Below are positions 3,052 through 52,140 of a stretch of 64,000 nucleotides of DNA, in pieces. The position numbers were made by a program, and so were the translations under genes. Origin of the DNA: Macrostomum lignano (lineage: Eukaryota); the NCBI GenBank assembly GCA_002269645.1, contig NIVC01000044.1:119498-183497 (forward strand), written 5' to 3'. The notes under the pieces are model-generated. The model worked only from the letters and a program-made list of their open reading frames with translations. It did not search any database and was not told the origin of the DNA. Within the stretch, counting starts at the first letter, position 1. Each line of letters begins with the position of its first letter.

Positions 3052-3795
3052 CTATTTAGTATAAACACCGCGTCTGGCCTTCACTGATGACAGAGCAGGC
3101 GGGACTCCGAGCAGCGAGGTGTCCTGTCCGCGGCTCAGCAGCTCCTCGTTCTGCAGGAACAAGTTGAACACCTCTGGGCTCAGCTTGGTTGCCGGGTCGT
3201 CAGGACTCGGAGGGATCACAGTCGGCGGCTGCTGTGCCACCAGATCGTCCAAGTAGGTCACCGCGTACAGAATGTAGCCGCCGTGAGCGCAGGGCACCAC
3301 GATGACGTCATCCTTGCTGAGCAGGGCCAGCACCTCTTCGATTGATGAGGCTCTGGGGAGGCTGGCCACGTCCTCCTTGCTGGCAAGAAGCTGCAGGTCC
3401 TTCAAGCCGGGCTGGCACCACCTGGCAGCCGCAGGCTTCTGGCCGTTGGGGGAGGCTGCACCACCAGCTGAGCTGCGAGATGAAGCTGATAAGGCGGACA
3501 CGCATGATGAGGATGAGGCGCCGGAGGAGTCTGAGGATGAGGATCCGGTCAGGGAGCAGGGCGATGATCGCTGCGTATCATCTGGTGAGGTCGCGGACTC
3601 GTGCCTCAGTTTTTGGTCATCGTTGAGCACAGTGAGAGCGCTGGAGATGGCGGGGAACAGACCGAGCAGATCCCGATCAGCTGATTCCCAAGTGCTCAGC
3701 TCAAAGATTCGCTCGTCAGCGTGTCTGCCAAGCCGCTTGATGAGATGCGACTCGGCTTTGCTGAACTGCTCGAATGGAGTCACTGCGGCTGGCAT
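3052..3795 (-). CDS. Orphan protein, 247 aa (copy 1 of inverted duplicate)
   Basis: ORF from MPAAVTPFEQ, with GC-rich codon usage like the conserved exons. Upstream are a small GTAAGC..CTGCAG 5'UTR intron and TATTAAA, CCAAT and GGGCGG motifs. No family recognised. Confidence 0.6.
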   Translation of the reverse strand: MPAAVTPFEQFSKAESHLIKRLGRHADERIFELSTWESADRDLLGLFPAISSALTVLNDDQKLRHESATSPDDTQRSSPCSLTGSSSSDSSGASSSSCVSALSASSRSSAGGAASPNGQKPAAARWCQPGLKDLQLLASKEDVASLPRASSIEEVLALLSKDDVIVVPCAHGGYILYAVTYLDDLVAQQPPTVIPPSPDDPATKLSPEVFNLFLQNEELLSRGQDTSLLGVPPALSSVKARRGVYTK

Positions 3796-4053
3796 CGTGC
3801 AGGCAGAGATGCTGAAGTTAGCAGGGCTTTGGTGAAACTGCAGATCAAACACCGTTGATGCTCTGTGCTTACTGGCAGCCTTTGGTCTTGGTGTAATTTG
3901 GAAGCCTTCGCTTGGATCGCAACTTTAATAGCCCTGCCCGCGCCCTCTGCCTGGGGGAGAGAGAGCGATTTCGGAACAGCGCGCCTGCCTGCCCTCCAAC
4001 CCCCACCCCCATGGATCCGCCCAGCCAATGGGCGCGCGACCTGGCTGGCGGCC
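3087..4053 (-). repeat. ~967-bp inverted segmental duplication, copy 1 (partner 51995-52961)
   Basis: The reverse complement aligns by eye end to end with 51995-52961, with scattered substitutions. Confidence 0.95.
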
Positions 4054-4960: not shown

Positions 4961-5243
4961 GAGGTTGTAGTTACGCTCGTAGAACGTTGGACTCACGACT
5001 TAAACGTCGGGGGTTCGATTCCAGATCACACTGGAACAACTTGTGTCCTTGAGCAAGAGCTGTAAAATGGGTGCCAGCATTAGCTGCGGTAATTGAGGGT
5101 GTGTTTTGCGATACTCCCCAGACCTTGGACTGAACAGCCGTACGCAGCCTTCAGATGCGCCGCGCAATAGCTGCGGCTGAGCTGTCAGTTGCACAGCTGG
5201 CCCAATTGGGGCAGGTGTAATCAATTATTATTATTATTATTAT
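4961..5243 (+). mobile_element. tRNA-derived SINE with CORE-like segment and (ATT)n tail
   Basis: tRNA-like head with B box GGTTCGATTCC (5012-5022); TTGTGTCCTTGAGCAAG..CTGTAAAATGGG resembles the CORE-SINE domain; (ATT)n at 5224-5243. Confidence 0.7.
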
Positions 5244-8995: not shown

Positions 8996-9667
8996 GATTG
9001 CTTGACTAGCTTCGAATTTCAGCATTCTCCTTTGACATCGCATTATCAAGGTGCTAATAAGGTTAAGGTCAATAAGCTTAGCAATGAGCTCAGTACCGTC
9101 CCCATTGACGTAGGCGCAGCATTATTAAAAATTTGTTTTAAAATAAAATTTCGCGTCACAGGCCCACACGCGCTTCTGACAGCTGACTCGCGCATTGCAT
9201 CACTCGCGCATTGCCCACCGAGCCCAAGCTTAAAGCAGATTAATAATAAACTCGCGTCCATAAACACGGGCAGGCCACTTGGTCGCTCCTTGTTGGTTCT
9301 TTTTATATTCGAGAAACTTTTTTTGCTTTGTTTCGTCTGACGTGTGACATGCACCCCATGCACCCCATGCACCCCATGAACCCCATTGCGTCACAGCTCT
9401 ACGCAACTGTCTGGGCCTGTCTGTCTGCCTGTCCGCAAACGAAGACAATTTATTGCGATAGCAGGCTGGAGAGGAAAACTGATACACGAACTGTTTGCAG
9501 CTCGGGGTGGGCAGGTTTTTTACTTTCGATTGACTATTGAAACATATATAGGTGTAGGTTTGGGTGAAACTTTAAGCTGCCTGTACCCTATTTGTTCATG
9601 ACGGGCTCAGAAGTGACGGTGATTGATTTATTGCCCCAATTCATTGCTTATCTACTTGACGTGCCTT

Positions 9668-10265
<598 letters not shown>

Positions 10266-12205: not shown

Positions 12206-12729
12206 AAATAGCTGCTGTAAGAGATGTTCACTATTCGAATTTCAGTTATATATGTGAGCCTCTGCCTCGAGTTCATTAGAGTATAGAATTTCCTGTAGAA
12301 ACGTGACTCAAAAATCGCAAAAGTCCGATGTGACCCCATTGCCCCGTGAAGCTCTGCTCAGCTTGCAACTTTTCCGTCTTTCTGACAATTCAACTCATGG
12401 CGAGGTGGCCATCAAAGCGGATGAAATGACAACGCGGCGCGCATGACACTTCAGCGGATTAGCAGGATGTAGCCCAAGGATTATATATTTCCGATAATTA
12501 CCCTATCGCGAATTAGCTAATTGATGGGCGAAAGTAAGACTGGCTTCAAGACTGTGACGCACGGAGGAAAGGTCAACCAGTGAAATGGCAAATATAATTA
12601 ATTATTCATTAATTAGTAGATTTGTCTTGCTTTGGACATTTGCTAGAAGTTATTAATTATTACAGCTATTGGTTATATAGAGGTGTGTCTGAATATTGAG
12701 ATCTAGGATGGCTGTTTGATGATTAGAGT

Positions 12730-13545
12730 TGCTGTGTGAATATTCCGGTGTGAATGCATTGCAAGAAATGAGTGAATAAGGAACGGGAACTGTGTGACTG
12801 CATTGCAAGAAATGAGTGAATAAGGAAGGGGAACTGTGTGACTGCATTGCGAGAAATGAGTGAATAAGGAAGGGGAACTGTGTGACTGCATTGCAAGAAA
12901 TGAGTGAATAAGGAAGGGGAACTGTGTGACTGCATTGCGAGAAATGAGTGAATAAGGAAAGGGAACTGTGTGACTGCATTGCAAGAAATGAGTGAATAAG
13001 GAACGGGAACTGTGTGAATGCATTGCGAGAAATGAGTGAATAAGGAACGGGAACTGTGTGACTGCATTGCGAGAAATGAGTGAATAAGGAACGGGAACTG
13101 TGTGAATGCATTGCGAGAAATGAGTGAATAAGGAAGGGGAACTGTGTGAATGCATTGCGAGAAATGAGTGAATAAGGAACGGGAACTGTGTGACTGCATT
13201 GCGAGAAATGAGTGAATAAGGAACGGGAACTGTGTGACTGCATTGCAAGAAATGAGTGAATAAGGAAGGGGAACTGTGTGACTGCATTGCGAGAAATGAG
13301 TGAATAAGGAAGGGGAACTGTGTGACTGCATTGCAAGAAATGAGTGAATAAGGAACGGGAACTGTGTGAATGCATTGCGAGAAATGAGTGAATAAGGAAG
13401 GGGAACTGTGTGAATGCCTTGCGAGAAATGAGTGAATAAGGAAGGGGAACTGTGTGACTGCATTGCGAGAAATGAGTGAATAAGGAAGGGGAACTGTGTG
13501 ACTGCATTGCGAGAAATGAGTGAATAAGGAAGGGGAACTGTGTAG
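12730..13545. repeat. Minisatellite, 44-bp unit GTGACTGCATTGCGAGAAATGAGTGAATAAGGAAGGGGAACTGT
   Basis: Direct inspection; explains the three ~280-aa minus-strand ORFs. Confidence 0.95.
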
Positions 13546-13924
13546 TCGATATGAAAGCATTTGTAAAAACCAGCTGTTCTAAAAGAACTTGTCTAACAAG
13601 AAAAAAGAAACCAATTACGCATTCAACTTTGAATTGGCGCCATTAGTTTTCATGGCAACGAGGGTAGGGAGAGCCTTGAAGTGGGGCTTGAGGCAGAGGC
13701 AGCAGTGGCCAAGCAGCATTGTTCTATTTTAGCTGGCAGCAAAATAAAGCTTCGATTTTCTATTTTCAAGAGCTTGGAAGACTGGCAGATGTGAGATGCT
13801 GCAATGAAAACAGTGCACTGAGCAGAACTGAGAACTTCTAGCAGCAATGCAGCTGAAAAAGCCCCGCTAATGCTTTATTCATCGTGAAATACTATATAGA
13901 AGTATACATGGAGTAGAAGATGGT

Positions 13925-15230: not shown

Positions 15231-15329
15231 ATTTATAGTCAAGGGGCAGAGTTTCAGTAAAGCGCGATCAATGTGTTCCGTCAGTTATTAATGTTTGTCC
15301 GCCAGAGCATCGGTAATTTCTACTGTTTC

Positions 15330-18176
15330 TCAATTGCTGGCCTTCTTCTTCTTTTTCTTGTCTTCGTCCTTGCCGTGACTGTCTTCGTCGTGATGGCGGC
15401 CGTGATGCTTCGCCGACTTCTTGCCTCGGGCGGCCCGGCGATAGTAGCGGCTGTAGTAGTCGCCAAGCAGGTCGTCAATGCCCTGATAGTTGCAGTCGGA
15501 GTCGCAGGAGGCTACAAGGCTGCCTCGGAATCCAACTGGACGGCGGTTGCAGCACTGGCCGGCCGGACAGTCCGAGTCCTGGGTGCAGCTGCGGGACAGG
15601 AAGCTGGGCTGGGCCGGCAGCTCGTAGCTCGAACTGGATGACGAGGCGGCGGAGACGGGCGGCGACGAATCGCCGTGACCGCGTCGGCGACAGAAGCCGC
15701 CCATGCCTGATGCGCATGAAAAAGAGGTAGATGTGTGAATCGGGTTGGAGGTGTGTGAATCCGGTAGGATATGTGTGAATCGGGTAGGTGTGTGAATTGG
15801 GTAGGAGATGTTGTGAATTGGAAAGCTGTAGGAATCGGGAAGGTGTCTGTGTGTGTGTGTGTGTGTGTGTGAATCGGGTAGGAGATGTTGTGAATTTGGA
15901 AGGAGATGTGTGAGTCGGGAAGGAGATGTGAATCGGGAAGAAAAAGTGTGAATCAGGAAGCAGATGTGTGAATCGGATAGGTGTGTGAATCGGGAAGGAG
16001 ATGTGAATCGGGAAGGAAGATGTGAATCGTATAGTTGCGTGAATCAGGTAGGTGCGTGAATCGGGAAGGAGATGTTTGGATTTGGAAGATGTGAATCGGG
16101 AAGGAGATGTGAATTGGGAAGGAGATGTGTGAATCGGGAAGGAGATGTGAATCGGGTAGGAGATGTGAATCGGGAAGGAGATGTGAATCGGGAAGGAGAT
16201 GTGTGAATCGGGAATGAGATGTGTGAATCGGGAAGGAGATGTGTGAATTCAGTAAGTGTGTGAATTTGGTAGGTGTGTGAATCGGGAAGGAGATGTTTGA
16301 ATTTGGAGGATGTGTGTTTTGGGTAGGTGTGTGAATCGGATATGTGTGTTTCGGCTAGGTGTGTGAATTGGGTAATGTGTGAATCAGGATGGAGATGTGA
16401 ATCGGGAAGATGTGTGAATTGGGTGGGTGTGTGAATCGGGAAGGAGATGTGTGAGTCGGGAAGGAGATGTTTGAATTTGCATGGGTACGAGCTCGTAGGT
16501 GTGTGAATCGATTAGATTCGATCAAGTTCGAAATGCACTGCTAGGCTGGCTGATCAGCAGTGATAGTTGAATTTGCTCATTCGCTCATAGCTCAGACATT
16601 TAACTAGCAAATCCGACCCCAGCTAGAACTCGACGAGTTCCCCCGTCAATCAGAAGTCTGCGAACTGCGAAAAAATATATAGGAGAGGATGGAGAGGGTG
16701 CAGTGAGGGGAAGGGAAGGAGGAATCCCAATTGGGAATAGGCAATTGGGGAATATAACAGCCCTCGCGGTGTCGTCTCTCTCCGTTCGCCAGAGTGGGTG
16801 GGGGCACCACAGCGCCTGCGACCGAATTCAATTACCTCGAATTACCCGGAATGAGAGTCCGATGGCCAGAGTGGGAAGTGTCCCCTAGGGCGGGCTGCTT
16901 AAGCTGGGCTACTTGTTCTTGTGCGGTCAGCTGGCTCTGCACTATTTATGTATACACGTATAGCCCCAGTATAAGAGTAAAGAGCCGCTCCACCAGAGAG
17001 CAGAAACTCGAATTTCTGCAGCCAAGGGAGACTCAATTGGCGGGCGAATAAGTAGGGGTTGGAGGGTTGGGGTATTCCCTACTGATGAGTGTTTGAAGGG
17101 CTGGGGTATTCCCTAGTGAGTGCTTGGAGTGCTAGGGTATTCCCTACTGAGTGTTTGAAGGGCTGGGGTATTCCCTACTGAAGGTGCTTGGAGGGCTGGG
17201 GCATTCCCTACTGAGAGTGTTTGAAAGGCTAGGGTATTCCCTACTGAGTGTATGGAGGGCTGGGGTATTCCCTACTGAGTGTATGGAAGGCTGAGGTATT
17301 CCCTACTGAGTGTATGGAGGGCTGAGGTATTCCCTACTGAGTGTATGGAGGGCTGAGGTATTCCCTACTGAGTGTATGGAGGGCTGAGGTATTCCCTACT
17401 GAGTGTATGGAGGGCTGGGGTATTCCCTACTGAGTGTATGGAGGGCTGGGGTATTCCCTACTGAGTGTATGGAGGGCTGGGGTATTCCTAGTGAGAGTGC
17501 TCGGAGGGCTGGGGTATTCCTAGTGAGGATGCTCGGAGGGCTGGGGTATTCCTAGTGAGGATGCTCGGAGGGCTGGGGTATTCCTAGTGAGGGTGCTCGG
17601 AGGGCTGAGGTATTCCTAGTGAGGATGCTCGGAGGGCTGGGGTATTCCTAGTGAGGGTGCTCGGAGGGCTGGGGTATTCCTAGTGAGGGTGCTCGGAGGG
17701 CTGAGGTATTCCTAGTGAGGGTGCTCGGAGGGCTGGGGTATTCCTAGTGAGGGTGCTCGGAGGGCTGAGGTATTCCTAGTGAGGGTGCTTGGAGGGCTGA
17801 GGTATTCCTAGTGAGGGTGCTTGGAGGGCTGAGGTATTCCTAGTGAGGGTGCTTGGAGGGCTGGGGTATTCCCTACGGATAGAATAATCGAACCGACCTT
17901 GCAGGTTGCTGTTGCCAACGGCGCACTGCAGTCCCTCGCAGCAGCCGCTGTCGCTCACGCAGTACGAGCCCTCGGCTTCGCACTGCAAAATTACAAAACG
18001 CCAATTTTTTGAGAAATCAGCCCCGTATTTACCAGAGTTCATGGTATGAAAACAGTCAAAATCTGTCATGAATAATGCAGGTTCACCTGGACGTAGAAGT
18101 CAGAGTTGCCATTGAGTCGAACGAAAGCTTGGGCAGAGCCAGCGACCAGCAGGACGATGGCCAGAACAGCCGACAT
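15330..18176 (-). CDS. Secreted cysteine-rich precursor, 183 aa: signal peptide, two six-Cys (knottin-like) modules, His/Lys-rich tail
   Basis: Exons 18176-18087 (MSAVLAIVLLVAGSAQA/FVRLNGNSDFYVQ, donor GTGAAC), 17982-17898 (CEAEGSYCVSDSGCCEGLQCAVGNSNLQ, donor GTCGGT) and 15706-15330 (GMGGFCRRR..CTQDSDCPAGQCCNRR..CDSDC..YYRR..KKKKKKASN*). Phases 0/1 are consistent. A possible 5'UTR exon lies near 18800-18853. Confidence 0.8.
15725..16510. repeat. Degenerate ~18-20-bp unit GTGTGAATCGGGAAGGAGAT (intronic)
   Basis: Begins right next to the acceptor at 15707. Confidence 0.9.
17065..17875. repeat. 31-32-bp unit GGAGGGCTGGGGTATTCC(C)TA.. (intronic)
   Basis: Two variant blocks with periods 31 and 32. 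Confidence 0.95.
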
Positions 18177-18429
18177 AGCTAGCTAAACTTTTAGCTTGAG
18201 ATTCTATGCGCGGGTTTGAGAGATTTGGCGAAGAAGCAGTCCCGGTTGCTGGGACAATTCCGCCTGTTTTGTAGCTACTCAAGCTCAAGACAGCCAATGG
18301 GGCCATTGAGGCGCGGATGAAGGAAGCTGGGGGAGGCCCTGTCATTGGACCAAGCAGGCGGACACGGATCCTCTTTTATCAAGGAGTACGGTATGGGAAG
18401 TCATTGCCTGTCTTTGAGTATCTCTTTAG

Positions 18430-19919: not shown

Positions 19920-22900
19920 TCAAATCTCTACTCCGCGCATTAGCTGAGGATCCAGCTGGATTCGGTATTCCCGCAGCGAGTTCAACAATCCCAACAGTTG
20001 ATCGCGCAGAGCCGGGTCGCGCATAAAACTGCCCGGCTCGTAGAACTGGCCGGCGTGCGGACTCTCGGACAGCAGCGACAGCCAGCCGGACAGTTGGTGG
20101 TCGCGTAGGCCGACACAGAGCCACACCTTTGGGCGAAAGAAATTTTAATTCGTAAATAATTTAACTCAAGATTAGACAGTGACAGACATTCTATTCCATA
20201 TTAGTAGCTTCTTAAACTATTGACCTAACCAACCTATTAAACTTAAAATGCTGAAACAAAACTACATATCTATAAAAGGAAGGTGGGAAGACATTGTAGG
20301 TCAGATAAGTAGAAAACAGTGGGTAGTGTGTGGGTGGGTGGGTAAGATAACTAAGGTTGGGTAGGTAGGGAGGCTGAAAGGCAGATAGGTAGACTAGGTA
20401 GGGAGATAGGTAGACTGGGTATGCAAACAGGTAGACAGGGTAGATAGACCCTACGGATAGACTGGGTAGGCAGATAGCTAAGCTGGGTAGGCAGATAGGT
20501 AGACTAGGTAGGCAGATGAGGTAGGCTGGGTAGACAATAGGTAGGTTAGGTAGGCAGATAGGTAGGCAGCTAGCTAAGCTAGGTAGGCAGATAGGTAGAC
20601 TAGGTAGGCAGATAGGTAGGCTGGGTGGGCAGATAGGTAGGCTACGTAGGCAGATAGGTAGGATATGTAGGCAGATAGGTAGGCTAGGTAGGCAGATAGG
20701 TAGGCTAGGTAGGCTACGTAGGCAGATAGGTAGGCTAGGTAGGCAGATAGGTAGGCTAGGTAGGCAGATAGGTAGGCTGGGTAGGCAGACAGAGCGGCAT
20801 ACATCAGATTCTCACCTGCAATTTGCTATCCTTGCCCAGACTGGCCGCATTATCAATCCGTTTAGCCGATCGGCAGAACACGGTAGCCTGCAGCTTCCTG
20901 CCCGTCTCCATGGTAACCAGCTGGCCCAGACAATGATGCACAGCTTTGTCAACAAAATCCCAGACGTACAGCTTGCGCATGTGAAAGAACCTGGCTGACC
21001 GGAAGCCCAGATGCAGAGCGGTCTCCAGGGCGGGCACCAGGCCAGCCTCGCCGCACAGCAGCAGGGTCAGCTGGTGCAGCGGAGACTCCCGGCCGTGGAA
21101 GAACTTCACAACGGCATTGACGGCGTCGCTAAGGCCTTGCTGGGCGGATTCGGCCGTGGCTCCGGCGGCTGCGGCAGCAGAGGAGGACGACGAGGCAGCG
21201 GCGGCGGCTGGCCCGGCCGGGTTGCCTCCGACGCCTCCGCCAGGCCCGACTTCCCCAGATGAGGTGGCGGTGGAGCCGCGCCTGCTCAGGCTGGGACTGC
21301 GGCAGCGGCTGGGCGGAGTTCTGTAGCCGTCGAACAGGCCGCCTCCGGCCGGCTCCTCGCTCTGGCCGCGCTCCCGGCCAAGGGTGCCGCCGCCGCCGCT
21401 GCCACCGGACACAGAACCGGACGGCCGGCCGGGACAGGACGAGCGGAGCAGTTCGGCCACTAGCAGACGCTCCGAGCTGCCGTCATCAACGTCGCGGCCG
21501 AGCCACCTGCCGCAGTGGAACCGGTACACGTGGCCGGTGTAGGCGTTCTGCACCAGCACGAATTCGACAAACCAGCGAGGCGAGATGCCGGTGTTGTCGT
21601 GACCGATGCGCAGGGTGGTGAGGCCGCCCAGGTTGGGGTGCTCGAATTGGAATTGCATCTGGCCTTTGGGCAGGGCTAGCAGGCCCGTGTCGGCCAGCTG
21701 GCCGTTGAGGCAGAACCAGGCGGTGGCTGAGGTGCTCGCGCCGCTGTACTTTTTGCCTATTGGGGCGGCATGGGTTGATGGGTTGACAGGTTTGATGGGT
21801 TGGTAGATTTGAAGGGTTGACAGGATTGATGGGTTGATAAGATTTGATGGGTTGGTAGATTTGATGGGTTGACAGGTTTGATGGGTTGATAAGATTTGAT
21901 GGGTTGGTAGATTTGATGGGTTGACAGGTTTGATGGGTTGATAAGATTTGATGGGTTGGTAGATTTGATGGGTTGATAGGTTTGATGGGTTGGTAGATTT
22001 GATGGGTTGATAGGTTTGAAAAGGAACGAAAAGGAACGAACATACAGCAGTGAAAGTCTGTGAAATCATGTGCTAATGCAGAAGTATACAAAAATTGTAT
22101 AATGTATGATAGACACCGATTTTATAAGAGCTACTAATTAAGTATAACAAACAAATTGCAAGCAATTACTGGTATTTTAATTGAAGATAGTTCGATTATT
22201 AAACAGAAATTTTAATAATGACACTGTTTCGATAAGCAAACAAATGACCCAAAGATGCCAACGAGCCAGATTGATGACCCAGAGATGCCAATGAGCCAGA
22301 TTGATGACCCAGAGATGCCAATGAGCCAGATTGATGACCCAGAGATGCCGATGAGCCAGATTAATGACCCAGAGATGCCAATGAGCCAGATTAATGACCC
22401 AGAGATGCCGAAGAGCCAGATTGATGACCCAGAGATGCCAATGAGCCAGATTGATGACCCAGAGATTCCAATGAGCCAGATTGATGACCCAGAGATTCCA
22501 ATGAGCCAGATTGATGACCCAGAGATGCCGATGAGCCAGATTGATGACCCAGAGATGCCGATGAGCCAGATTGATGACCCAGAGATGCCAATGAGCTAGA
22601 TTGATGGCCAGATTGATGACCCAGAGATGCCAATGAGCCAGATTGATGACCCAGAGATTCCAATGAGCCAGATTGATGACCCAGAGATGCCAATGAGCCA
22701 GATTGATGACCCAGAGATGCCAATGAGCCATATCGATAACCCAGAGATGCCAATGAGCCAGATCGATGACCCAGAGGTTTTAATGGCTCAGACTGGTGAC
22801 GCAGGTTGTAAAAGATGGCTATTATGAGTGACAGAAATTTTCCGCACGCACAAAGAAATTAGCCAAACACCTACCAGGATTAAGCTGCTGCACTCGCTGA

Positions 22901-25878
22901 GGCTGGGGAATCTGCCGCTTCAGTTTAGTCAACTCCATCTCCTTATTATAGAACAGGTTTAGGTGAGACCACAGCGCAGATTTGCCGTGCCTGGTGCTCA
23001 AACCGTGCGACCAGATTCGCTCCAACAGGTCGCACAGACCCGCCACCAGAGTGTTCTCTTCGACCCCGTTCAGCTCAATGTCCGTGTGACCGAGCTCCAG
23101 AGCCTCGTGTCCCATCTTTTCCACCACCATGCGTTTAGTCTGGGATTCAATGATGGGCGAGGGCGCTGCTTACAATGAGTAGCATGCGATGATGAGGTGG
23201 GTCATTTGGGAATTTAACTCTTGAGATTGAGGATCCGAGAGTCATTTTGGAATCGATATTACAAATGGGGATCTCGGAAGCCAGTGGGGAATTGATATTA
23301 ACAAATGGGGATCTCGGAAGCCAGAGGGGAAATGATATTAACAAATGGGGATCTCGGAAGCCAGTGGGGAATTGATATTAACAAATGGGGATCTGGGAAG
23401 CCGGTGGGGAATTGATATTACAAATGGGGATCTCGGAAGCCAGTGGGGAATTGATATTAACAAATGGGGATCTCGGAAGCCAGTGGGGAATTGATATTAA
23501 CAAATGGGGATCTCGGAAGCCAGTGGGGAATTGATATTAACAAATGGGGATCTCGGAAGCCAGTGGGGAATTGATATTAACAAATGGGGATCTGGAAAGC
23601 TAGTGGGGAATTGATATTAACAAATGGGGATCTGGGAAGCCGGTGGGGAATTGATATTACAAATGGGGATCTCGGAAGCCAGTGGGGAATTGATATTACA
23701 AATGGGGATCTGGGAAGCCAGTGGGGAATTGATATTAACAAATGGGGATCTCGGAAGCCAGTGGGGAATTGATATTAACAAATGGGGATCTCGGAAGCCA
23801 GTGGGGAATTGATATTAACAAATGGGGATCTCGGAAGCCAGTGGGGAATTGATATTAACAAATGGGGATCTCGGAAGCCGGTGGGGAATTGATATTAATA
23901 AATGGGGATCTGGGAAGCCGGTGGGGAATTGATATTAACAAATGGGGATCTGGGAAGCCGGTGGGGAATTGATATTAATAAATGGGGATCTGGGAAGCCG
24001 GTGGGGAATTGATATTACAAATGGGGATCTGGGAAGCCGGTGGGGAATTGATATTAACAAATGGGGATCTGGAAAGCTAGTGGGGAATTGATATTAACAA
24101 ATGGGGATCTCGGAAGCCAGTGGGGAATTGATATTAACAAATGGGGATCTGGGAAGCCAGTGGGGAATTGATATTAACAAATGGGGATCTCGGAAGCCAG
24201 TGGGGAATTGATATTAACAAATGGGGATCTGGGAAGCTAGTGGGGAATTGATATTAACAAATGGGGATCTCGGAAGCCAGTGGGGAATTGATATTAACAA
24301 ATGGGGATCTCGGAAGCCAGTGGGGAATTGATATTAACAAATGGGGATCTGGAAAGCTAGTGGGGAATTGATATTAACAAATGGGGATCTGGGAAGCTAG
24401 TGGGGAATTGATATTAACAAATGGGGATCTCGGAAGCCAGTGGGGAATTGATATTAACAAATGGGGATCTGGGAAGCCGGTGGGGAATTGATATTACAAA
24501 TGGGGATCTCGGAAGCCAGTGGGGAATTGATATTAACAAATGGGGATCTGGGAAGCCAGTGGGGAATTGATATTAACAAATGGGGATCTCGGAAGCCAGT
24601 GGGGAATTGATATTAACAAATGGGGATCTCGGAAGCCAGTGGGGAATTGATATTAACAAATGGGGATCTCGGAAGCCGGTGGGGAATTGATATTAATAAA
24701 TGGGGATCTGGAAAGCTAGTGGGGAATTGATATTAACAAATGGGGATCTCGGAAGCCAGTGGGGAATTGATATTAACAAATGGGGATCTGGGAAGCCAGT
24801 GGGGAATTGATATTACAAATGGGGATCTGGGAAGCCGGTGGGGAATTGATATTAACAAATGGGGATCTGGAAAGCTTGTGGGGAATTGATATTAACAAAT
24901 GGGGATCTCGGAAGCCAGTGGGGAATTGATATTAACAAATGGGGATCTGGGAAGCCAGTGGGGAATTGATATTAACAAATAGGGATCTCGGAAGCCAGTG
25001 GGGAATTGATAACAAATGGGGATCTGGGAAGCTAGTGGGGAGTTGATAATAACAAATGGGGACCTGGGAAGCCGGTGGGGAATTGATAATAACAAATGGG
25101 GATCTGGGAAGCTAGTGGGGAATTGATAATAACAAATGGGGATCTGGGAAGCCGGTGGGGAATTGATATTAATAAATGGGGATCTGGGAAGCTAGTGGGG
25201 AATTGATATTAACAAATGGGGATCTGGGAAGGTGGGGAATTGATATTAACAAATGGGGACCTGGGAAGCCGGTGGGGAATTGATAATAACAAATGGGGAT
25301 CTGGGAAGCTAGTGGGGAATTGATAATAACAAATGGGGATCTGGGAAGGTGGGGAATTGATATTAATAAATGGGGATCTGGGAAGCTAGTGGGGAATTGA
25401 TATTAACAAATGGGGATCTGGGAAGGTGGGGAATTGATAACAAATGGGGATCTAGGAAGCTGGTGAGGAAGTGATTGTTAGAAATGGGGAGCGGCTAACC
25501 TTGCTCTTGCACTCTTTGAGCAGGGCCTCCACAAATTTCCAGTTGGTCTGCGCCATCACCGAGGGCGCCATGTCGGACAAGTTTGGCTGGCGCAACGATT
25601 TCACTCGATTTTCTTGCATGTATTTCTGGAGGTTGGCGAAACAAAGGCAAAGGAGAGTGTAGGATGTATAGATTAATAATACCTACGCAAGTAGTCGGCA
25701 AAAATAAAGTACGGGCTAGCAACAACAGGCTGTGTATAACAAAAAATGTAAATTAAAAAAATAAGAAATCATAGCTTTTAATTTTATTAAGCAAACAGTT
25801 TAAGATACTACTACTAGCTTTTTAGTAGTTCTTGAGTAGTTTATCATTACTCGCTTGCTATTACTATTATACTATTAC

Positions 25879-25913
<35 letters not shown>

Positions 25914-28900
25914 GTAGTAGTAGTAGTAGTAGTAGTAGTGGAAGTAGTAGGATGATTCGAGTATTTGAGCAATATTCTCCATCAAATGCACTGCTAAATT
26001 CGAAGTACAGGTCGGCTTCGTTAAACATGCTATAAATTAAACAAATAAGTTTAGCAAATATTAATTTTTCATTGGGGATAAGCTTAGCAAAAATATAGCA
26101 AACAGATAACTAAAAACTCTATTTACACGGTGAACTTCACCCAAACAAATACCATAGCATAGGCAAACAGTTACACGCATTATGCGTTTAAAGTGGACAG
26201 GGGGTGAGAGGAGACGAAGAAGAGTGGGGGGAAAGAGAGGGAAATGGGAGAAGATCGAGGGGAAGGGAGAATAGGGGGAAGTGAGAAGAGGGGCGGAGAA
26301 GAGAATGAGAGGGGAGAAGAGGGGGAAGGGGAAAGAGAGGGAAAGAGGAGAAAAGAGGGGAAGGGGAGAAGAGAGGGGAAGAGGAGAAGAGAGGGGAAGA
26401 GGAGAAAAGAGGGGAAGAGGAGAAGAGAGGGGAAGAGGAGAAGAGAGGGGAAGAGGAGAAAAGAGGGGAAGGGGAGAAGAGAGGGGAAGAGGAGAAGAGA
26501 GGGGAAGAGGAGAAAAGAGGGGAAGAGGAGAAGAGAGGGGAAGAGGAGAAAAGAGGTGGAAGGGCAGAAGAGAGGGGAAGAGGAGAAGAGAGGGGAAGAG
26601 GAGAAGAGAGGGGAAGAGGAGAAGAGAGGGGAAGAGGAGAAGAGAGGGGAAGAGGAGAAGAGAGGGGAAGGGGAGTAAAGAGGTGGAAGGGCAGAAGAGA
26701 GGGGAAGAGGAGAAGAGAGGGGAAGAGGAGAAGAGAGGGGAAGGGGAGAAGAGAGGGGAAGAGGAGAAAAGAGGTGGAAGGGCAGAAGAGAGGGGAAGAG
26801 GAGAAGAGAGGGGAAGAGGAGAAGAGAGGGGAAGAGGAGAAAAGAGGTGGAAGGGCAGAAGAGAGGGGAAGAGGAGAAGAGAGGGGAAGAGGAGAAAAAG
26901 AGGGGAAGAGGAGAAGAGAGGGGAAGAGGAGAAGAGAGGGGAAGAGGAGAAGAGAGGGGAAGAGGAGAAGAGAGGGGAAGAGGAGAAGAGAGGGGGAGAG
27001 GAGAAAAGAGGGGAAGAGGAGAAGAGAGGGGAAGAGGAGAAGAGAGGGGGAGAGGAGAAAAGAGGTGGAAGGGGAGAAGAGGGAAACGAGGGAAGTCAAG
27101 AAAAGGAGAGGGAAGAAGAGACTACAAATCGGTAGCAGAAACAGGAGAGATAAGAGAAAACTGGGTGAGCTCTAGAGTAAAAATAATTCATCCTGACACC
27201 TGATTAAAGGCTCATAGGTGACACGGAGGGCGGGAAGCGGACACACGTACTCACTCCAGCGGCAGCAGAAAAAGTCGTGAATAAAGAAATAAAACAGATA
27301 CAACGAAGAAAAGCCAAAATAATTAAGGAGAGCGCGGGGACTTACAATCCACATCTTGGCGTGTTTTTCCGCCAATTCCTTCTGCACAGGAATTTGGATT
27401 AGAAAACAGGTAAACAAAGTTAATCAAAACTGATTAAATGGTTCGGGCTTGTAATTTTTAGGTAGCAAAACGAAAAGTAACCTTTAAAGCAAAAGTTAAG
27501 TCAAACCTAAACAATTGCGTTGTTAAAGTAAAGGCAACCAATACAAACAAAACGAAACTGGCAACTTGAACTGTGTTGCAACTTCAACTGGAACAGATAA
27601 TACCACACCGTGAATACCTACGATGTTGGTGAACAGTGAGATTATAGCTGTGATATTGGTAAATAGTGAGATTATAACTGTGATGTTGGTGAACAGTGAG
27701 ATTATAGCTGTGATGTTGGTGAACAGTGAGATTATAGCTGTGATGTTGGTGAACAGTGAGATTATAGCTGTGATATTGGTGAACAGTGAGATTATAACTG
27801 TGATGTTGGTGAACAGTGAGATTATAGCTGTGATGTTGGTGAACAGTGAGATTATAACTGTGATGTTGGTGAACAGTGAGATTATAACTGTGATGTTGGT
27901 GAACAGTGAGATTACAGCTGTGATGTTGGTGAACAGTGAGATTATAACTGTGATGTTGGTGAACAGTGAGATTACAGCTGTGATGTTGGTGAACAGTGAG
28001 ATTATAACTGTGATGTTGGTGAACAGTGAGATTATAGCTGTGATGTTGGTGAACAGTGAGATTATAGCTGTGATATTGGTGAACAGTGAGATTATAACTG
28101 TGATGTTGGTGAACAGTGAGATTATAGCTGTGATGTTGGTGAACAGTGAGATTACAGCTGTGATGTTGGTGAACGGTGAGATTATAGCTGTGATGTTGGT
28201 GAATAGTGAGATTATAGCTGTGATGTTGGTGAACAGTGAGATTACAGCTGTGATGTTGGTGAACAGTGAGATTATAACTGTGATGTTGGTGAACAGTGAG
28301 ATAATAACTGTGATGTTGGTGAACAGTGAGATTATAGCTGTGATGTTGGTGAATAGGAGATTATAGCTGTGATGTTGGTGAATAGTGAGATTATAGCTGT
28401 GATGTTGGTGAACAGTGAGATTATAACTGTGATGTTGGTGAACGGATAGCAATATGTTAGTGAACAAGTGAACGCTAAGAAGCATTATGTGAATAAATAA
28501 TAAATGCAAACAGTGACACGCGCTGGCTAGTGAACACTGTGCGTGAACATGTGTGAGCATGCCCTTCCGAGTGCATAGTCGTGGTAACTACATGAAATTA
28601 CTACATACAGTACTGTAATGTAAAATCAGTGTCAAGTTTACATACCTCGCGTCGCTCGGACAGGATCTTGAGATGTTGAACAGCTCGAACTCGCTGACTA
28701 ACCCGCTTCACCCGCTTCCAATCCTTGGTCTGCAGAACCGAATAATGCGAGCACAATGGCCGATGGCGCAGAAAATCTTCATTTAGTTTTCCCAACTGAC
28801 CGGGCACGCGGTCAGCCTGCTGCCAGCCGGATGGAAAACCTTCCAATAGGTGCGGCGCCGGACATTGCGTATCCGGGTGCCGTCGCTTCTCGATTAATAG

Positions 28901-31900
28901 ACTCTCTGCATTGGAATTTGCATTTAATATAACCTTGAAAAATAAGCGATATTATGTTTACTTTTCTACTTATAGTAGGTGAAATGATTAACACCATTAA
29001 ATAGACGCTTCCATTCGACTATCTAGTAAGTCGCGATGGCCGAGTGGTTAAGGCGTTGGACTCGAAATCCAATGGGGTTTCCCCGCGCAGGTTCGAATCC
29101 TGCTCGCGACGAATTTTTTTACGGTCTATTTTTTAGAGAAGTTGTAATATTTTATAATGCTGACCGAGAATACTATAAATGAAGAAGATCATGCAGCAGC
29201 AATCATCGTGACAATAAAAACATTAATATTTATAGTACTAGTGCTAGCTCTTATGCTTTATTTCTCTCGTATCGTTTTGCTGTTTGAGTTTTCAGCTAAA
29301 GATAAGCCGGGCAAATCCCTGAAGTCCAAAAGTCGGGTCGCTGTATGCTCGCTGCACTGTTGCTACGCCTTCTCTTCCCTCTTCCTTGCAAATTCCTGGC
29401 TTCCCTATTCACTCGAGTTGAGCTAAGGCCTAGGAGAGACGCTCATATGATGATAAGTCCCAAATAAAATAGGAGCGGCAATGAAATGCATTCAGACAAA
29501 CTCGCTTTTATAGACCCTTTCGATCCCCCGTCTTATCTGAGCACCCGTTGCCTCCCTCTCTATAATAGTCTATATTTCATCAGTTCTGTACACACAATAA
29601 TCGATCCATACCAAATACCATCGCATCAACTCAACTCCCGTCTTAGATAGAATTTCGAATAACAACTAACTTAGTTCAGAAATGAGGAAAAGTATAAAAC
29701 ACAAGTTCGGCCATTGGTTTTATAAAAGTTAGAAAACGATTCCTATATAGTCATGAATCTATATGCCATCAAATATTTCAACGTAATTTCAACTTGAAAA
29801 AATAATTTGTCCATATAATTTAGCCCTTTATAAAGTAGTTTTCGATACATATCGGCATTATAAAAATGCCTTTTCGCACTTTTTTTAAACCAGAAAAACC
29901 TTTATGAAATAACAGAATACTACTAGGGCATATAAAAAATAAAATGCCGAAGTAATAGCGTCCTGTTTGAAAAAAGACCAATATTGAATTTAGAATAGCC
30001 TCTTTTCACATAATTTTAAACAATGCGCAAATTATACTACTACCCACTCGCAACCCTTAGAAGAAATTAAGGGTTCATCAGCCCGGTAGTCAGACGGACT
30101 AGCATATATTGGACTGCTTGTCACCTGATGGAATGCAGAAACTGGGGATAGGAAATATTTAGGAATACTAGACTATGCACTACAGCAGAGCATGGTCAAC
30201 AAAGGATATGTAAATTGCTGCGAGGCAGAACCCATTTATAAAACTAACAAGATATTAATCTATCCAAGCGAAAGAGAAAGTTCTGTTTCTATTTTTATCC
30301 AATATTATTACTATATAGTAATTGCGAATTCATTCGAATGTGGAAGGCTGGAAAAATGACTATATGCATAGGCTACATAGCCTCCTCTTTACCTAAAAAA
30401 CCTCAGGTAGGTGCAACAGATGCGCAAAAGCGGGTTTTCCAATATGAAACATTCCACAGACGCTAGGAAATCGAACTGTGACTAAGCTAACATTGAAAAC
30501 AATAACTAAGTATTCTAACAATAACTAAGAGAATATTTATATGACGAATCAGTTTATTTATCTACTACAGTCATAGTTACTCCCGCCGTTTACCTCGAGT
30601 CATACAGGAAACCTATATTTTCTACTATTCAATCATTCATTCTATCGAAGCTCTTTCACCCCCTGACAACAGGCGCAAAGCGACCGCAGGATAGATTATA
30701 TTTAGTAATATTATTACGAGTATTATCGTGCAAGTTGCTTAGAATGGGACAGCGCTTGCAACCTGATGATGGATGCTGACTGACCCCGACCTGGAATGAC
30801 CTCAACAGCAACACTGCGCCTATACACACGCTCGGGTCTGAAAAAGGGAAGTCTGAAGTCTCTCATTTCTTTCTGCACTACTGAGGAAATTTGGGGAGAA
30901 AAGGTTTCATACATCCCCCACACATTGTGGCAAACTGCAGTAAACACAAAATCTCACAAATAGACGAAAATCAGATTCAAAATCCTCGCCCGTACAAATC
31001 TCTCCCCAAGATTAACAACCCAACAAATCTCTCCACAAAATAAAAAAGACAGATCTCTCCTTTAAATGAAAAAATCTCATCTATAGATAGACAGGTCTGA
31101 AATCTCACCTAAAGATTAATTGACCCAAAATCTCATCCTTAGACTCATAGGACTCGAAACCTCACAAACATTGCCTTTTCAAACTATAAATCTCCATATA
31201 TCACTCAAAGGCAAGCGACACCGAATCCATAATTTATTTTGCAAATCTCTACTAGGATAAAAAAGATGAAAAGGAAAAGTTCAATCTGCGCTGTAATAAC
31301 TTTCTATACATATCGGTAGACACAAAACTACTACTAACCAGACTCGGGTATGCAGGCCACAGGCTGGTAGATTTTCATGCCCAGCCGGTCCGCGTTGGGG
31401 CCGCCTTCAAGCCGCTGCTGCTGCATTTTGCGCTGCTCGATTCTATCGTGAAATAGTCGCAAGTTCGAATCCTCCTGATTCGATAGCTTGGACAAAATCT
31501 TCAAATCTAGCAGAGTGGCAAACATTTGCGTCTCGAGAAACGGCGACAAGAAGGCGAGATAAGCGTTGGGGAAGTCGTTGACGAAGGCGCTCTTGTCGAA
31601 TTTGTTCGTGTCCCGGCCGGACACCATGTCGCTGACGTCCTGCTCGCCGTCCTTTACGTACTCGTCGTAGTCCTTGAAGGCGGTTGGATGAGGAGTGCTG
31701 ACGGATTGGAGGAAAAGCTCAGAGATAAGCAAAATTCAGACACTAAGACTGTCTGAGTCCTTTGTTTGGGCGGTGTCTTAGAAAGACAGACAGACGGACA
31801 CTAGGACAGCCAGAGCTGCCAGACCGATACTAAGACAGACATACAGACAGATAGACAGACAGACAGACAGTCAGACAGTCAGACAGACAGACAGACACTA

Positions 31901-31948
31901 AGACAGACAGACAGACACTAAGACAGACACTAAGACAGACAGACAGAA

Positions 31949-31989
<41 letters not shown>

Positions 31990-31992
31990 GTC

Positions 31993-32023
<31 letters not shown>

Positions 32024-32180
32024 TAGACAGACAGTCAGACAGACAGACAGACACTAAGACAGACAGACAGACACTAAGACAGACACTAAGACAGACAGAC
32101 ACTAAGACAGACAGGCAGACAGACAGACAGACACTAAGACAGACACTAAGACAGACAGACAGACAGACAGGCAGACAGGC

Positions 32181-32225
<45 letters not shown>

Positions 32226-32228
32226 CTA

Positions 32229-32269
<41 letters not shown>

Positions 32270-32296
32270 CTAAGACAGACAGACAGACAGACACTA

Positions 32297-32385
<89 letters not shown>

Positions 32386-35300
32386 CACAGACAGACAGAC
32401 AGACAGACAGACAGTCAAGAGCAACACTTAAGAGCAACTCTGTTAAAATTCCCCGTGCTTCATCAATATCCTGGAATTCAGAAAGAATCAGCTACAGACG
32501 AACGGACTAATGCAAAACAGGTGACCGGCTTTACAAGACTAGAGAAATCTAAAAGTTCAAGCAGGCCATAAACATGATCACATTTCGTGAACGGTATCAG
32601 CAGTTTTCAAGACAGACAAACTCTATCGAGGGTCGCATAAAACACTTGGAAAGCCCGTGAACTGCGCAAATTTCCTGGTGAACAGAAATTTTGCCAGCTC
32701 GCCAGCTTTGCAGGAAAACAAAAGCGGATGGAAAGGAGAAATTCTGCTGCTTATGTACTTTAACATTGATTTTAGGACAGATGGGCACACTTCTTTAGAG
32801 TTAGAGAGGCTGCAGTGCGAAGATTATGGCTAGAAAAATGTTATGATTTAAGAGAGAGCCGTGTCCACCAGCTTAACTCTGATCTTCCCTGAGCTAGATG
32901 GAACTGACCTGAAACCACATGCCCACATTTTTCTAAGACCGCACTGGACATCTGAAATCCCACTCTCTGAGGAAAATTAATTGAACTTTTCTTCTTTCTG
33001 CTTGAAGCACTGTATAGGAGGGCTAGCATGGAGCAGCCCTCAGGGTTGGATTGGGGCGATTCTCAGGGTTGGATTGGGGCGATTTTCAGCGTTGGATTGG
33101 GGCGATTCTCAGGGCTGGATTGGGGCGATTCTCAGGGTTGGGTTGGGGCGATTCTCAGGGCTGGATTGGGGCGATTTTCAGCGTTGGATTGGGGCGATTC
33201 TCAGGGCTGGATTGGGGCGATTCTCAGGGTTGGGTTGGGGCGATTCTCAGGCTTGGATTGGGCCGATTCTCAGGCTTGGATTGGGCCGATTCTCAGGGTT
33301 GGATTGGGGCGATTCTCAGGGTTGGATTGGGGCGATTCTCAGGCTTGGATTGGGCCGATTCTCAGGGTTGGATTGGGGCGATTCTCAGGGCTGGATTGGG
33401 GCGATTCTCAGGGTTGAATTGGGGCGATTCTCAGGGCTGGATTAAGGCGATTCTCAGGGTTGAATTGGGGCGATTCTCAGGGTTGGATTGGGGCGATTCT
33501 CAGGATTGGATTGGGGCGATTCTCAGGGTTGGATTGGGCCGATTCTCAGGGTTGGATTGGGGCGATTCTCAGGGTTGGATTGGGGCGATTCTCAGAGTTG
33601 GATTGGGGCGATTCTCAGGGCTGGATTGGGGCGATTCTCAGGGTTGGATTGGGGCGATTCTCAGGGTTGGATTGGGGCAATTTCTCAGGGCTGGATTGGG
33701 GCGATTCTCAGGGTTGGATTGGGGCGATTCTCAGGATTGGATTGGGGCGATTCTCAGGGTTGGATTGGGGCGATTCTCAGGGTTGGATTGGGCCGATTCT
33801 CAGGGTTGGATTGGGGCGATTCTCAGGATTGGATTGGGGCGATTCTCAGGATTGGATTGGGGCGATTCTCAGGGCTGGATTGGGGCGATTCTCAAATTGA
33901 ACCAGAGACACGGAAAGAAATTCGAAATGAAATAGACCTGTACTACGACAATCAGCAGACACTGCGACTCACCTGCAGCAGGAAGGCGAAGTGATTAAGG
34001 AAAATCTCTCGCATGGCATTGTTAAACTTCAGCATCGAATGGTAGCGCTTCTCGTACATCTCCTCGTTTGGCGAGGCCGACTTTTTCATCATCAGAGACG
34101 ACGACGTCGTTGCAGTCGAAGATGGCGGCGGAGTCGCCGAGTCGCCGGGGCGGCCAGCCGCGGGGTCAGCTGCGCCAGTCTTGGCGCCAGTCGAGTTGTT
34201 ATTGGAAGAGGCATTGGCAGCGGCCGCGGCCGCCAGCCGTTCGGTGAGATTCTCCAGCGACACATTAGCGGTCCTAGCCAGCATGTACACGTGCTCCAGG
34301 GTGTCGCTGCGATTGAAGCCGTCAGCGGCGGCGGCGGCGGCGGCGGCGGCAGCAGCAGCGGATGCCGACGCAGAGGCTTGCAGATTGGCTTCAGAATGTA
34401 CGCTGTGCCGATAGGAGCTTCTAGTGGAACTCATGCCACTGTCCGCGTCAAAACTCTGCGACTTGACGATGCCGCCTGGCGCCGCCGCGGGTGCAACACC
34501 GACTGCGGCAGCGGCTTCGGCGCCGGACGGACCAGCTTGATGATGATCGGTGTCGCCCGAAGGGCCCAGAGACAGCCTGGACATCTGCTGCTGCTGCTGT
34601 TGTTGCTGCTGCAGTTGGTTCCGCCAATCAGAGGCTAGATGATCATCGCAGTCCACCGGGTACAGTCTCAGGATGTTAGTGATTTCCTGTTTCAGTTCGC
34701 GTTCGTTTGGCAACTTCGGCAGATCGTCGGGAGCTTTCACCCGGCGCTGGTCGATGTAGACGAAGCACACGTTTGCCTGGAGAGGGCGGGACAGGGAGTG
34801 AAAATCTCACAGTATTTTTAGTAAGCAGGCTACGCCCTTCGTGTAGAGTGAATTTTAAACTAGACGCTCACCTCGCTAGGCAGGTGAACATCCTCAGGAT
34901 CTTCGTCCTCTTGCAGACGGAGTCCCATAATGAAGGGCACGGGCGCCTCCAGGAAGTGCTTCAACGAGGCCGGCAGTATTGGCACGTAGACGTGGGGCCA
35001 AACGAAAGGAAATAGCAGGGTAGTGATGGACTCGGCGACCAGGATCAGATTGCGGTAGTCTGCGAGTTATCAAACCAAACCAAGATAGGGATATTTATGA
35101 ATACAAGGATTTCAGAATCAGTAATAGTAAAGTAATTTATAATGATGATTTATAAAGTAAGCTAAATGGGCTGCAGCTGAAAGGTGAGGAGAGATAAGAA
35201 GAGACGAGGGGAGATAAGAGATGGGAGAAAAAGGGAAGATAGATAAGAGAAAGGAGATAAGAGATGAGATAAGAGAAATGAGAATAAGAGGTAAGATAAG

Positions 35301-39523: not shown

Positions 39524-39743
39524 TATATGTCATAAAACAATGATACTCATTGCAGATGAGTCCATAAACTATTGGGGATTCCTCTCAAATATGACCTCAA
39601 GTTTGGGACTTGGTCAAGCCTAGACTAAGCTAGATTCTTCTTTTTTCCACCTTGCCATCTTTTAGTTAATTGATAGATAAAATGACTTTTCAAAAAATCA
39701 AAGAATTTATTAGGACGATATTAGATATTGAATGCTACAGTAA

Positions 39744-51994: not shown

Positions 51995-52140
51995 GGCCGC
52001 CAGCCAGGTCGCGCGCCCATTGGCTGGGCGGATCCATGGGGGTGGGGGTTGGAGGGCAGGCAGGCGCGCTGTTCCAAAATCGCTCTCTCTCCCCCAGGCA
52101 GAGGGCGCGGGCAGGGCTATTAAAGTTGCGATCCGAGCGA
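51995..52140 (+). promoter_or_regulatory. Putative Pol II promoter of orphan gene copy 2 (reverse CCAAT, GC box, TATA-like)
   Basis: CCCATTGGCT (~52017), GGGCGG (~52025) and GGCTATTAAAGT (~52115) in the canonical order upstream of the 5'UTR intron. The same motifs are mirrored at 3920-4053. Confidence 0.4.

Follow-up and report, generated by a model that had tools for sequence, protein, structure and literature searches.

A three-exon Macrostomum gene for a predicted secreted protein with two cysteine-rich modules

Inhibitor cystine knot (ICK) domains generally act on membrane receptors or ion channels. Their canonical hairpin lies between the fifth and sixth cysteines (Cys5 and Cys6), while the fingers of colipase- and Dickkopf-type domains are found between the adjacent cysteine pair and Cys5. 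One two-domain example is the remipede toxin phi-Xibalbin3-Xt3a (Xt3a), a double-ICK activator of the ryanodine receptor (PMC9950431). Our literature searches turned up no arthropod-toxin-like knottin domains for free-living flatworms, and those on flatworm knottins and on Macrostomum neuropeptide precursors yielded nothing relevant. Here we describe a gene on a 64,000-nucleotide stretch of Macrostomum lignano contig NIVC01000044.1, hereafter the window, which lies on the minus strand at positions 15330-18176 and encodes a protein of 183 residues. Judged by sequence comparison, the gene adds to a small, uncharacterised, lineage-restricted macrostomid family. We put at roughly 60% the probability that it is a real single-copy three-exon gene for a secreted protein made of an ICK and a second module, which is trimmed and likely serves as an extracellular ligand or blocker. 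At present it is an ordinary lineage-specific secreted protein of the well-known class of secreted cysteine-rich mini-domains.

Gene model and macrostomid relatives

The gene was proposed in an earlier note, in which three exons were spliced by eye from the DNA. The parts of the gene and its product, all on the minus strand, are as follows.

18087..18176, minus strand: exon 1, 90 nt, residues 1-30; ATG, signal peptide and FVRLNG N-terminus; ends in phase 0 directly before Cys1
18126-18176, minus strand: signal peptide, residues 1-17, MSAVLAIVLLVAGSAQA, with A-x-A (AQA) at -3..-1 and hydrophobic core AVLAIVLLVA
17983..18086, minus strand: intron 1, 104 nt, GTGAAC...TTTTGCAG, GC 0.37
17898..17982, minus strand: exon 2, 85 nt; Cys1-Cys5 of the ICK module (CEAEGSYCVSDSGCCEGLQC...); ends in phase 1
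15707..17897, minus strand: intron 2, 2191 nt, GTCGGT...CTCTTTTTCATGCGCATCAG (CATCAG end)
15330..15706, minus strand: exon 3, 377 nt including the stop; Cys6 of module 1, RRR, Ser-rich linker, module 2, Tyr-rich helix, basic cluster and tail
15492..15587, minus strand: module 2, residues 99-130, C-x5-C-x4-CC-x14-C-x3-C; predicted disulfide-braced beta-hairpin
15417..15491, minus strand: conserved C-terminal segment, residues 131-155; predicted helix with LLGDYYSRYYRR, then the basic cluster RRAARGKK
15330..15416, minus strand: His/Lys/Asp-rich tail and TGA, residues 156-183, 28 residues, isoelectric point (pI) 9.5, HHGRHHDEDSHGKDEDKKKKKKASN

Joining the exons (90 + 85 + 377 nt) gives an in-frame open reading frame (ORF) of 552 nt that runs from ATG to TGA and encodes 183 residues, among them 12 Cys, and both introns have canonical GT..AG ends. 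An in-frame TAG at 18183-18185 stands 9 nt 5' of the ATG, so the reading frame has no earlier start within exon 1. As the note had remarked, a mechanical list of ORFs shows the gene only as separate fragments, of 36, 97 and 124 residues, the last being the ORF at 15330-15704 within exon 3; splicing by eye at the first pass thus caught a true gene that escapes ORF scanning, and every motif listed in the note was located in the spliced 183-residue protein. Intron 2 is almost entirely minisatellite, with a 32-bp unit repeated 25.6 times (17061-17875) and a unit of about 18-20 bp repeated 33-40 times (15732-16476). The GC content at third codon positions (GC3) of the spliced coding sequence is 0.78, close to the 0.69-0.78 of the adjoining DENND5-like and PNUTS-like exons, and for comparison the non-coding GC is 0.37 in intron 1 and 0.39 in the upstream spacer. 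A 122-residue antisense ORF (15273-15641, plus strand) overlaps exon 3; such ORFs commonly arise opposite a GC3-rich coding strand, and it is no gene.

An exhaustive phmmer (HMMER) scan of 1.84 billion cluster representatives with the 183-residue protein as query (E <= 1e-3) matched four proteins, P0001-P0004. Two of these are family members. P0002 (149 residues, E 6e-16) is the M. lignano hypothetical protein BOX15_Mlig005172g1/g2 (PAA53895.1, PAA74677.1, PAA82649.1; UniProt A0A1I8GME6), and P0003 (166 residues, E 9e-8) is the M. lignano hypothetical protein BOX15_Mlig031025g2 / Mlig019154g1 (PAA46256.1, PAA94324.1). P0011, a protein of 154 residues, came from a profile search; its coding sequence is unbroken on a Logan contig of 925 nt (run SRR28338164), which fits a candidate spliced transcript. 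All three relatives align collinearly with the window protein over all three exons, and the M. lignano homologues are only 33-49% identical to it. No match was returned by a word-indexed search with the 183-residue protein or by an exact-sequence look-up of the exon-3 ORF, no relative was found in a scan of JGI metagenomes with module 2 plus the helix, and a second profile search gave no further relatives.

The other two matches were set aside. P0001, the top match (6326 residues, E 2e-26), is a spurious one: it is a repeat protein rich in Gly and Ala that contains 4 Cys, and thirty weak stretches sum to its score. P0004 (Tetrahymena thermophila XP_001031946.2, E 1e-4) was not counted in the family, as its likeness is confined to module 1 and there to the ICK cysteine pattern. 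This ciliate ‘transmembrane protein’ carries two copies of C-x6-C-x5-CC-x4-C-x13-14-C matching module 1, a likeness that probably reflects convergent cysteine patterning. Some database models of the family themselves look faulty. P0010 (A0A1I8JNY7) reads as an intron-retaining mis-model of P0002 that runs into intron 2, and P0005 (A0A1I8FAU1) is an older M. lignano model of the same locus, fused to an upstream Pro/Gln/His-rich protein. The automatic UniProt names of cluster members are mutually inconsistent (Ixodegrin, WAP domain, Calglandulin, Prokineticin domain, CC domain), and the family is evidently hard to annotate automatically.

To compare gene structures, the exons of the M. lignano genes were rebuilt by exact matching to their proteins. 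All three genomic genes (those of the window protein, P0002 and P0003) have three exons, with both introns at the same alignment columns and in phases 0 and 1. Intron 1 (phase 0) falls directly before Cys1, and intron 2 (phase 1) falls in the Cys5-Cys6 loop, where it splits the codon of Gly59 in the window protein, Arg63 in P0002 and Arg74 in P0003. The P0003 and window genes also agree in the length of exon 2, 85 nt. Intron 2 of the P0002 gene is likewise long (2.1-2.6 kb) and bears an unrelated minisatellite of 26 copies of a 44-bp unit; the P0003 gene is compact, at 1010 bp (L004 10001-11010), with the same intron positions. Since intron columns and phases match in the M. lignano genes, the splice model is settled as far as comparative data reach. 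Together with the in-frame join, the GT..AG introns and the collinear homologues, this comparison of sequences confirms the hidden three-exon gene as genuine, spliced as first proposed. The window gene is probably an orthologue of Mlig005172, and Mlig031025 and Mlig019154 are paralogues.

Conserved architecture and the fold of each module

An alignment of the four proteins has 29 invariant columns, and the 12 Cys, the N-terminal motif and the YYxRYY motif are invariant or nearly so. The signal peptide was judged by the von Heijne rule, and its prediction in the earlier note is upheld by the hydrophobic core, by AQA at -3..-1 and by a hydrophobic N-terminus in all homologues. The mature protein would begin with FVRLNG, and the homologues with FIRIMG, FIRIMG and YLRLMG, giving the motif F/Y-x-R-[LI]-x-G. 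Module 1 follows (C-x6-C-x5-CC-x4-C-x13-C), with its spacing kept in the homologues, and then a Ser/Pro-rich linker of 34 residues in the window protein and 15-34 residues across the homologues, the sequence of which is not conserved. Module 2 shares the motif C-x-x-D-x-D-C-P with the homologues, plus R-G in the hairpin.

The C-terminal part is conserved up to a point. The window protein contains both DYYSRYYRR and GKK, and the homologue counterparts of the helix and basic cluster are YYSRYYRSSYRKKR, YYNRYYRTSYRKKR and YYPRRFGR; the helix row reads YYSRYYR, YYNRYYR and YENYYPRR, and the basic cluster, RRAARGKK in the window protein, is RKKR in P0002 and P0011 and RRFGR in P0003. Among the mono- and dibasic sites sought in this alignment, the C-terminal basic cluster alone is conserved; neither the RRR that follows module 1 nor the GKK Gly has been kept. 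We see CERE... or CQSP... in the homologues in place of the RRR, with no basic site, so the conservation one would look for in a cleavage site is absent from three of three homologues. The His/Lys tail, which the note had also singled out, is present in the window protein alone; P0002, P0011 and P0003 end in SVNEN, SSGSSDDRN or have no tail. Because both are lacking in all three homologues, we read the RRR and the tail as lineage-specific additions. The basic processing cluster that the note placed after the Tyr-rich segment has, by the same alignment, a counterpart throughout the family, and is a candidate proprotein-convertase site and, in the window protein only, a possible amidation site too. 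The conserved core consists of the N-terminus, the two disulfide domains, and the helix together with the basic cluster after it. As a separate observation, carboxypeptidase trimming and amidation of the P0003 terminus (...YYPRRFGR) could give an RF-amide C-terminus, a feature that the other members do not have.

Module 1 fits the ICK spacing C-x(2-7)-C-x(3-11)-CC-x(0-7)-C-x(4-13)-C. When its profile was searched against all PDB sequences, the remipede toxin Xt3a (7RZ3) was matched at E 4.7e-8, with per-domain i-Evalues of 0.015 and 2.6e-4, and both ICK repeats of Xt3a fit the consensus C-x-x-EG-x-x-C-x-S-D-x-x-CC-x-GL-x-C. The next profile matches, at E 0.05-1, were spider ICKs (a DkTx domain and the ProTx-II class), sea-anemone Ms11a, tachystatins and DKK domains. 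A search of the PDB by single sequence gave only noise (myoglobin). The closest Pfam toxin families stayed below their cut-offs (Toxin_12, 17.6 bits vs 21; Conotoxin_I2, 17.6 vs 27). An AlphaFold2 model built with the four-sequence alignment has a predicted local distance difference test score of 70-80 in both modules and below 50 in the signal peptide, linker and tail. In a Foldseek search with the full model, the spider ICK toxin Magi4 was matched with a template-modelling score of 0.56 and a root-mean-square deviation of 1.9 over 34 columns, which at E 3.6 is not significant; the other small-protein matches, to the draxin Cys-rich domain, Dkk4 and SIBD-1, were not significant either, though all these proteins are of a kind to be expected. 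By its spacing and its significant profile similarity to a solved double-ICK toxin, module 1 is, at the level of sequence, an acidic ICK domain of arthropod-venom type.

The note had described a precursor with two knottins, and for module 1 this description stands, but not for module 2. Against PDB sequences, module 2 had no significant match to any ICK (best E 0.2), and its best Foldseek matches, the DKK1 C-domain (E 1.2) and U21-hexatoxin (E 2), were not significant. Its only other matches (WAP, Dickkopf_N, Squash and DKK1) are sub-threshold; for WAP, the homologues score 15.6-16 bits vs a cut-off of 20.8, the modules have six Cys against the eight of a WAP four-disulfide core, and the window protein has no match. 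Module 2 aligns to module 1 with an hhalign probability of 3.6%, and an origin of module 2 by internal duplication of module 1 was rejected on that value. The predicted beta-hairpin of module 2 (residues 110-116 and 121-127) falls between Cys4 and Cys5. Because of this hairpin position and the want of any significant sequence or fold match, the two-knottin label is unsupported. On the predicted structure, the more accurate label would be an ICK plus a second, unassigned six-Cys hairpin module, the latter colipase/Dickkopf-like at best.

Processing and possible roles

In the mechanism that we propose, the 17-residue signal peptide would route the product into the secretory pathway and be cut off after Ala17. 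The basic cluster after the helix is probably where an enzyme of the furin or prohormone-convertase type then trims the protein; P0002 and P0011 have a textbook furin site there, RKKR with S as the next residue, and in the window protein RRAAR and GKK are candidate sites at which trimming would free the His/Lys tail. The Tyr-rich amphipathic helix would close the conserved part, after a module 2 that resembles a colipase or Dickkopf finger. By analogy with other ICK proteins, the folded two-domain core would most likely be an extracellular ligand of a membrane receptor or ion channel, or a blocker of one.

The genes around the locus bear on what kind of ligand this might be.

19920-37414, minus strand: DENND5-like gene, ~17 kb; uDENN/DENN 36704-37414, dDENN 31334-31732, PLAT 20804-22069, last exon with stop 19920-20126
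58832-60925, minus strand: PNUTS-like ORF, 697 residues, TFIIS/Med26 domain

No paralogue of the knottin gene was found elsewhere within the 64-kb window. Both the window gene and the Mlig005172 locus have a PNUTS-like gene on their upstream side and on the same strand, a loose microsynteny in which the conserved exons are 70-73% identical at the DNA level to those of the gene ~7 kb upstream of the P0002 gene (L002 2773-6300). The PNUTS-like proteins of the two loci are 39% identical over the first 261 residues, with one 52-residue block at 75%. As this neighbour is only 39% identical, the 43-49% identity of the window protein is not an accelerated divergence. The two loci differ in that, in the window, the DENND5-like gene sits between the PNUTS-like and knottin genes. 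The knottin gene begins 1.7 kb downstream of the DENND5-like stop on the same strand, and its exons were considered as 3' exons of the DENND5-like gene. This was rejected: the DENND5-like gene has its own stop at 19920, in an exon that reads as a DENND5-type C-terminal, and the end of the 20804-22069 ORF plus the last exon (19920-20126) was read by eye as a RUN domain. The knottin gene is independent of its neighbour.

An endogenous signalling or cytokine-like role is weakly favoured over that of a fast-evolving venom-array toxin or a reproductive protein, because the gene is single-copy, its synteny and mature N-terminus are conserved and its divergence rate is ordinary. A more specific form of this proposal, which we offer tentatively and consider rather doubtful, is that the protein would be an endogenous flatworm knottin hormone or cytokine, built of an ICK and a colipase-like finger, in which the F/Y-x-R-[LI]-M-G N-terminus might be a receptor-activating motif by analogy with the AVITGA of prokineticins.

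Several points weigh against the reading of the gene as one for a trimmed extracellular ligand or blocker. No Pfam family came up to its gathering threshold, whether the whole protein, a module or a homologue was scanned, and no Foldseek match to the full model or to module 2 was significant (all E-values >0.5). The family has few sequences, and conservation statistics are thin because only four distinct proteins are known. The exact cleavage point is only inferred, as the basic cluster varies (RKKR, RRAARGKK, PRRFGR). A full-text literature search for the M. lignano gene IDs found no mention of them, and they are absent from supplementary files including a neoblast/germline re-analysis and a three-species Macrostomum RNA-seq study, which may be incomplete or use other IDs. 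The ranking of hormone over toxin rests on indirect arguments, and sequence alone cannot choose among neuropeptide, toxin and gland product.

The protein could instead be a gland-secreted toxin or defence peptide, used in prey capture, predator deterrence or as an antimicrobial, with its ICK directed at ion channels of other organisms. We hold this to be unlikely but worth serious consideration. The best matches of module 1 are venom ICKs (remipede Xt3a, spider DkTx-type and sea-anemone Ms11a) along with the antimicrobial tachystatins of horseshoe crabs, and venoms are known to use secreted cysteine-rich peptides of two domains (PMC9950431). However, the gene is present in single copy in the window with no tandem array, its orthology and synteny are conserved, it has diverged no faster than the gene for its nuclear neighbour, and the protein has no N-terminal propeptide that ends in a basic site. 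To our knowledge, no venom apparatus has been described in macrostomids.

A classical neuropeptide or prohormone precursor, neuronally expressed and cut at RRR, RR and GKK into small peptides of which one would be amidated, is in our view improbable. The signal peptide and basic clusters are in place, GKK in the window protein is a canonical signal for amidation plus cleavage, the RRFGR end of P0003 could yield an RF-amide and the RKKR of P0002 and P0011 is a perfect furin site. However, as neither the internal basic site nor the amidation Gly is conserved, a multi-peptide precursor is disfavoured: the RRR is missing from every homologue, and conservation falls on the two disulfide domains and not on short peptides bounded by dibasic sites. 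Neither Pfam nor the exhaustive search brought out a similarity to ITG-like, prohormone-3 or any known neuropeptide family. The note had seen a loose resemblance to the ITG-like and prohormone-3 precursors of arthropods, for which we obtained no support: no arthropod protein was matched at E <= 1e-3 among the 1.84 billion representatives, profile searches likewise gave no such similarity, and the host is a flatworm.

It is decidedly unlikely, we believe, that the protein is a reproductive or adhesive gland product (prostate or seminal fluid, cement, shell or adhesive gland) whose Tyr-rich helix and His/Lys tail bind surfaces, matrix or metal. The Tyr/Arg/Lys/His-rich C-terminus, with a tail pI of 9.5, does resemble surface-binding motifs, and published M. 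lignano studies deal, at least in part, with putative seminal-fluid proteins and the adhesive duo-gland system (PMC5977470, PMC4016567). However, the tail belongs to the window protein only and lies after the conserved cleavage cluster, and divergence is not accelerated, unlike in typical reproductive proteins. The absence of the gene IDs from the neoblast/germline and three-species RNA-seq files is a further, weak point against a gland product, given that the files may be incomplete or use other IDs.

That the protein is a divergent member of the Dickkopf/colipase/prokineticin superfamily, in which a variable linker likewise connects two Cys-rich domains, and serves as an extracellular antagonist or cytokine seems to us very unlikely. 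Dickkopf_N matches both modules below threshold, chains of DKK1, DKK2 and DKK4 are among the weak PDB sequence and fold matches, and one M. lignano member carries the automatic UniProt name ‘Prokineticin domain-containing protein’. The conserved mature N-terminus is also reminiscent, by analogy, of the functionally essential N-terminus of prokineticins. However, each module has 6 Cys and not 10, the fold matches are not significant, Dickkopf_N reaches at most 17.9 bits vs a cut-off of 25, and there is no Prokineticin Pfam match even at E 10. Finally, that the locus is not functional, being a chance assembly of ORFs or a pseudogene, could draw on its non-canonical poly(A) signals (AATAAC and TATAAA only), but is effectively refuted by an intact ORF, canonical splice sites, gene-like codon bias, the conservation of all 12 Cys and intron positions that agree with annotated M. 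lignano genes.

Repeats in the window and comparison with known systems

The window is extremely dense in minisatellites, for example at 9592-10203, 12653-13560, 22177-22753, 26188-27175 and 27523-28560, with more stretches at 33051-33994, 37263-38529, 50129-51474 and 58426-58904. Most long ‘ORFs’ on the mechanical list are translated tandem repeats, and the M. lignano homologue loci look alike in this respect. The introns of the DENND5-like gene are rich in minisatellites too, and a mariner-type transposase ORF (35498-36583, plus strand) lies inside the gene. An inverted duplication of 967 bp, 98.3% identical, occurs at 3087-4053 and 51995-52961, ~48 kb apart; each copy has an ORF of 241-266 residues (3052-3852, minus strand; 52253-52978, plus strand) with a Ser-rich centre and no Pfam match. 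A reverse-transcriptase fragment (RVT_1) at 39670-40710 on the plus strand has 81-94% DNA identity to an element in an M. lignano contig (L004 13037-14156), which points to one shared retroelement family. An alignment of 213 bp, 71% identical and in non-coding context, joins window 4980-5151 to L002 6753-6965; it may be a repeat like a short interspersed nuclear element, and ARAGORN found no transfer RNA in it.

With the orthologue added here, it becomes possible to define what this unnamed macrostomid family conserves: the N-terminus, 12 Cys, the YYxRYY helix and the basic cluster. As a model in which transgenesis, RNA interference and in situ tools are available, M. lignano makes the function of the family directly testable. 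Were the protein an endogenous ligand, a new signalling peptide would have been found, part of a lineage-specific system drawn from a fold known mostly from venoms; this would suggest that the arthropod-venom-type ICK motif predates venomous lineages or recurs outside them. Were it a gland toxin, it would offer a rare molecular handle on flatworm chemical ecology.

Among known systems, M. lignano hypothetical proteins stand closest; these are annotated but unstudied, and the closest characterised sequences are arthropod venom ICKs. Mlig005172 and Mlig031025 share with the window protein a signal peptide, the F/Y-x-R-[LI]-M-G N-terminus, the 6-Cys ICK module, a linker, the 6-Cys module 2, the YYxRYY helix and the basic cluster, as well as three exons with identical intron positions and phases; they differ in having shorter linkers and neither the RRR after module 1 nor the His/Lys tail. 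The likeness to ITG-like and prohormone-3 precursors is generic, consisting of a signal peptide and basic sites, and those precursors belong to a different phylum. To the Dickkopf/colipase/prokineticin group (MIT1, astakine) the window protein is likened by the C-x5-C-x4-CC of module 2 and the long, Cys-closed beta-hairpin after it, and by two Cys-rich domains with a variable linker between them; it differs in having 6 Cys per module vs 10, no AVIT motif and no significant match. With Xt3a and the spider ICKs of the Toxin_12/huwentoxin type (DkTx), module 1 shares the spacing C-x6-C-x5/6-CC-x4-C-x9-13-C, and like Xt3a the window protein is two-domain, cysteine-rich and secreted. In contrast to the arthropod venom ICKs, its second domain is no ICK repeat, the linker of its family, probably disordered, is long (15-34 residues) and variable, its score for the Pfam toxin families falls short (17.6 vs 21 bits) and the host is a flatworm with no known venom system. 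The likeness of module 1 to the arthropod venom ICKs may be convergent.

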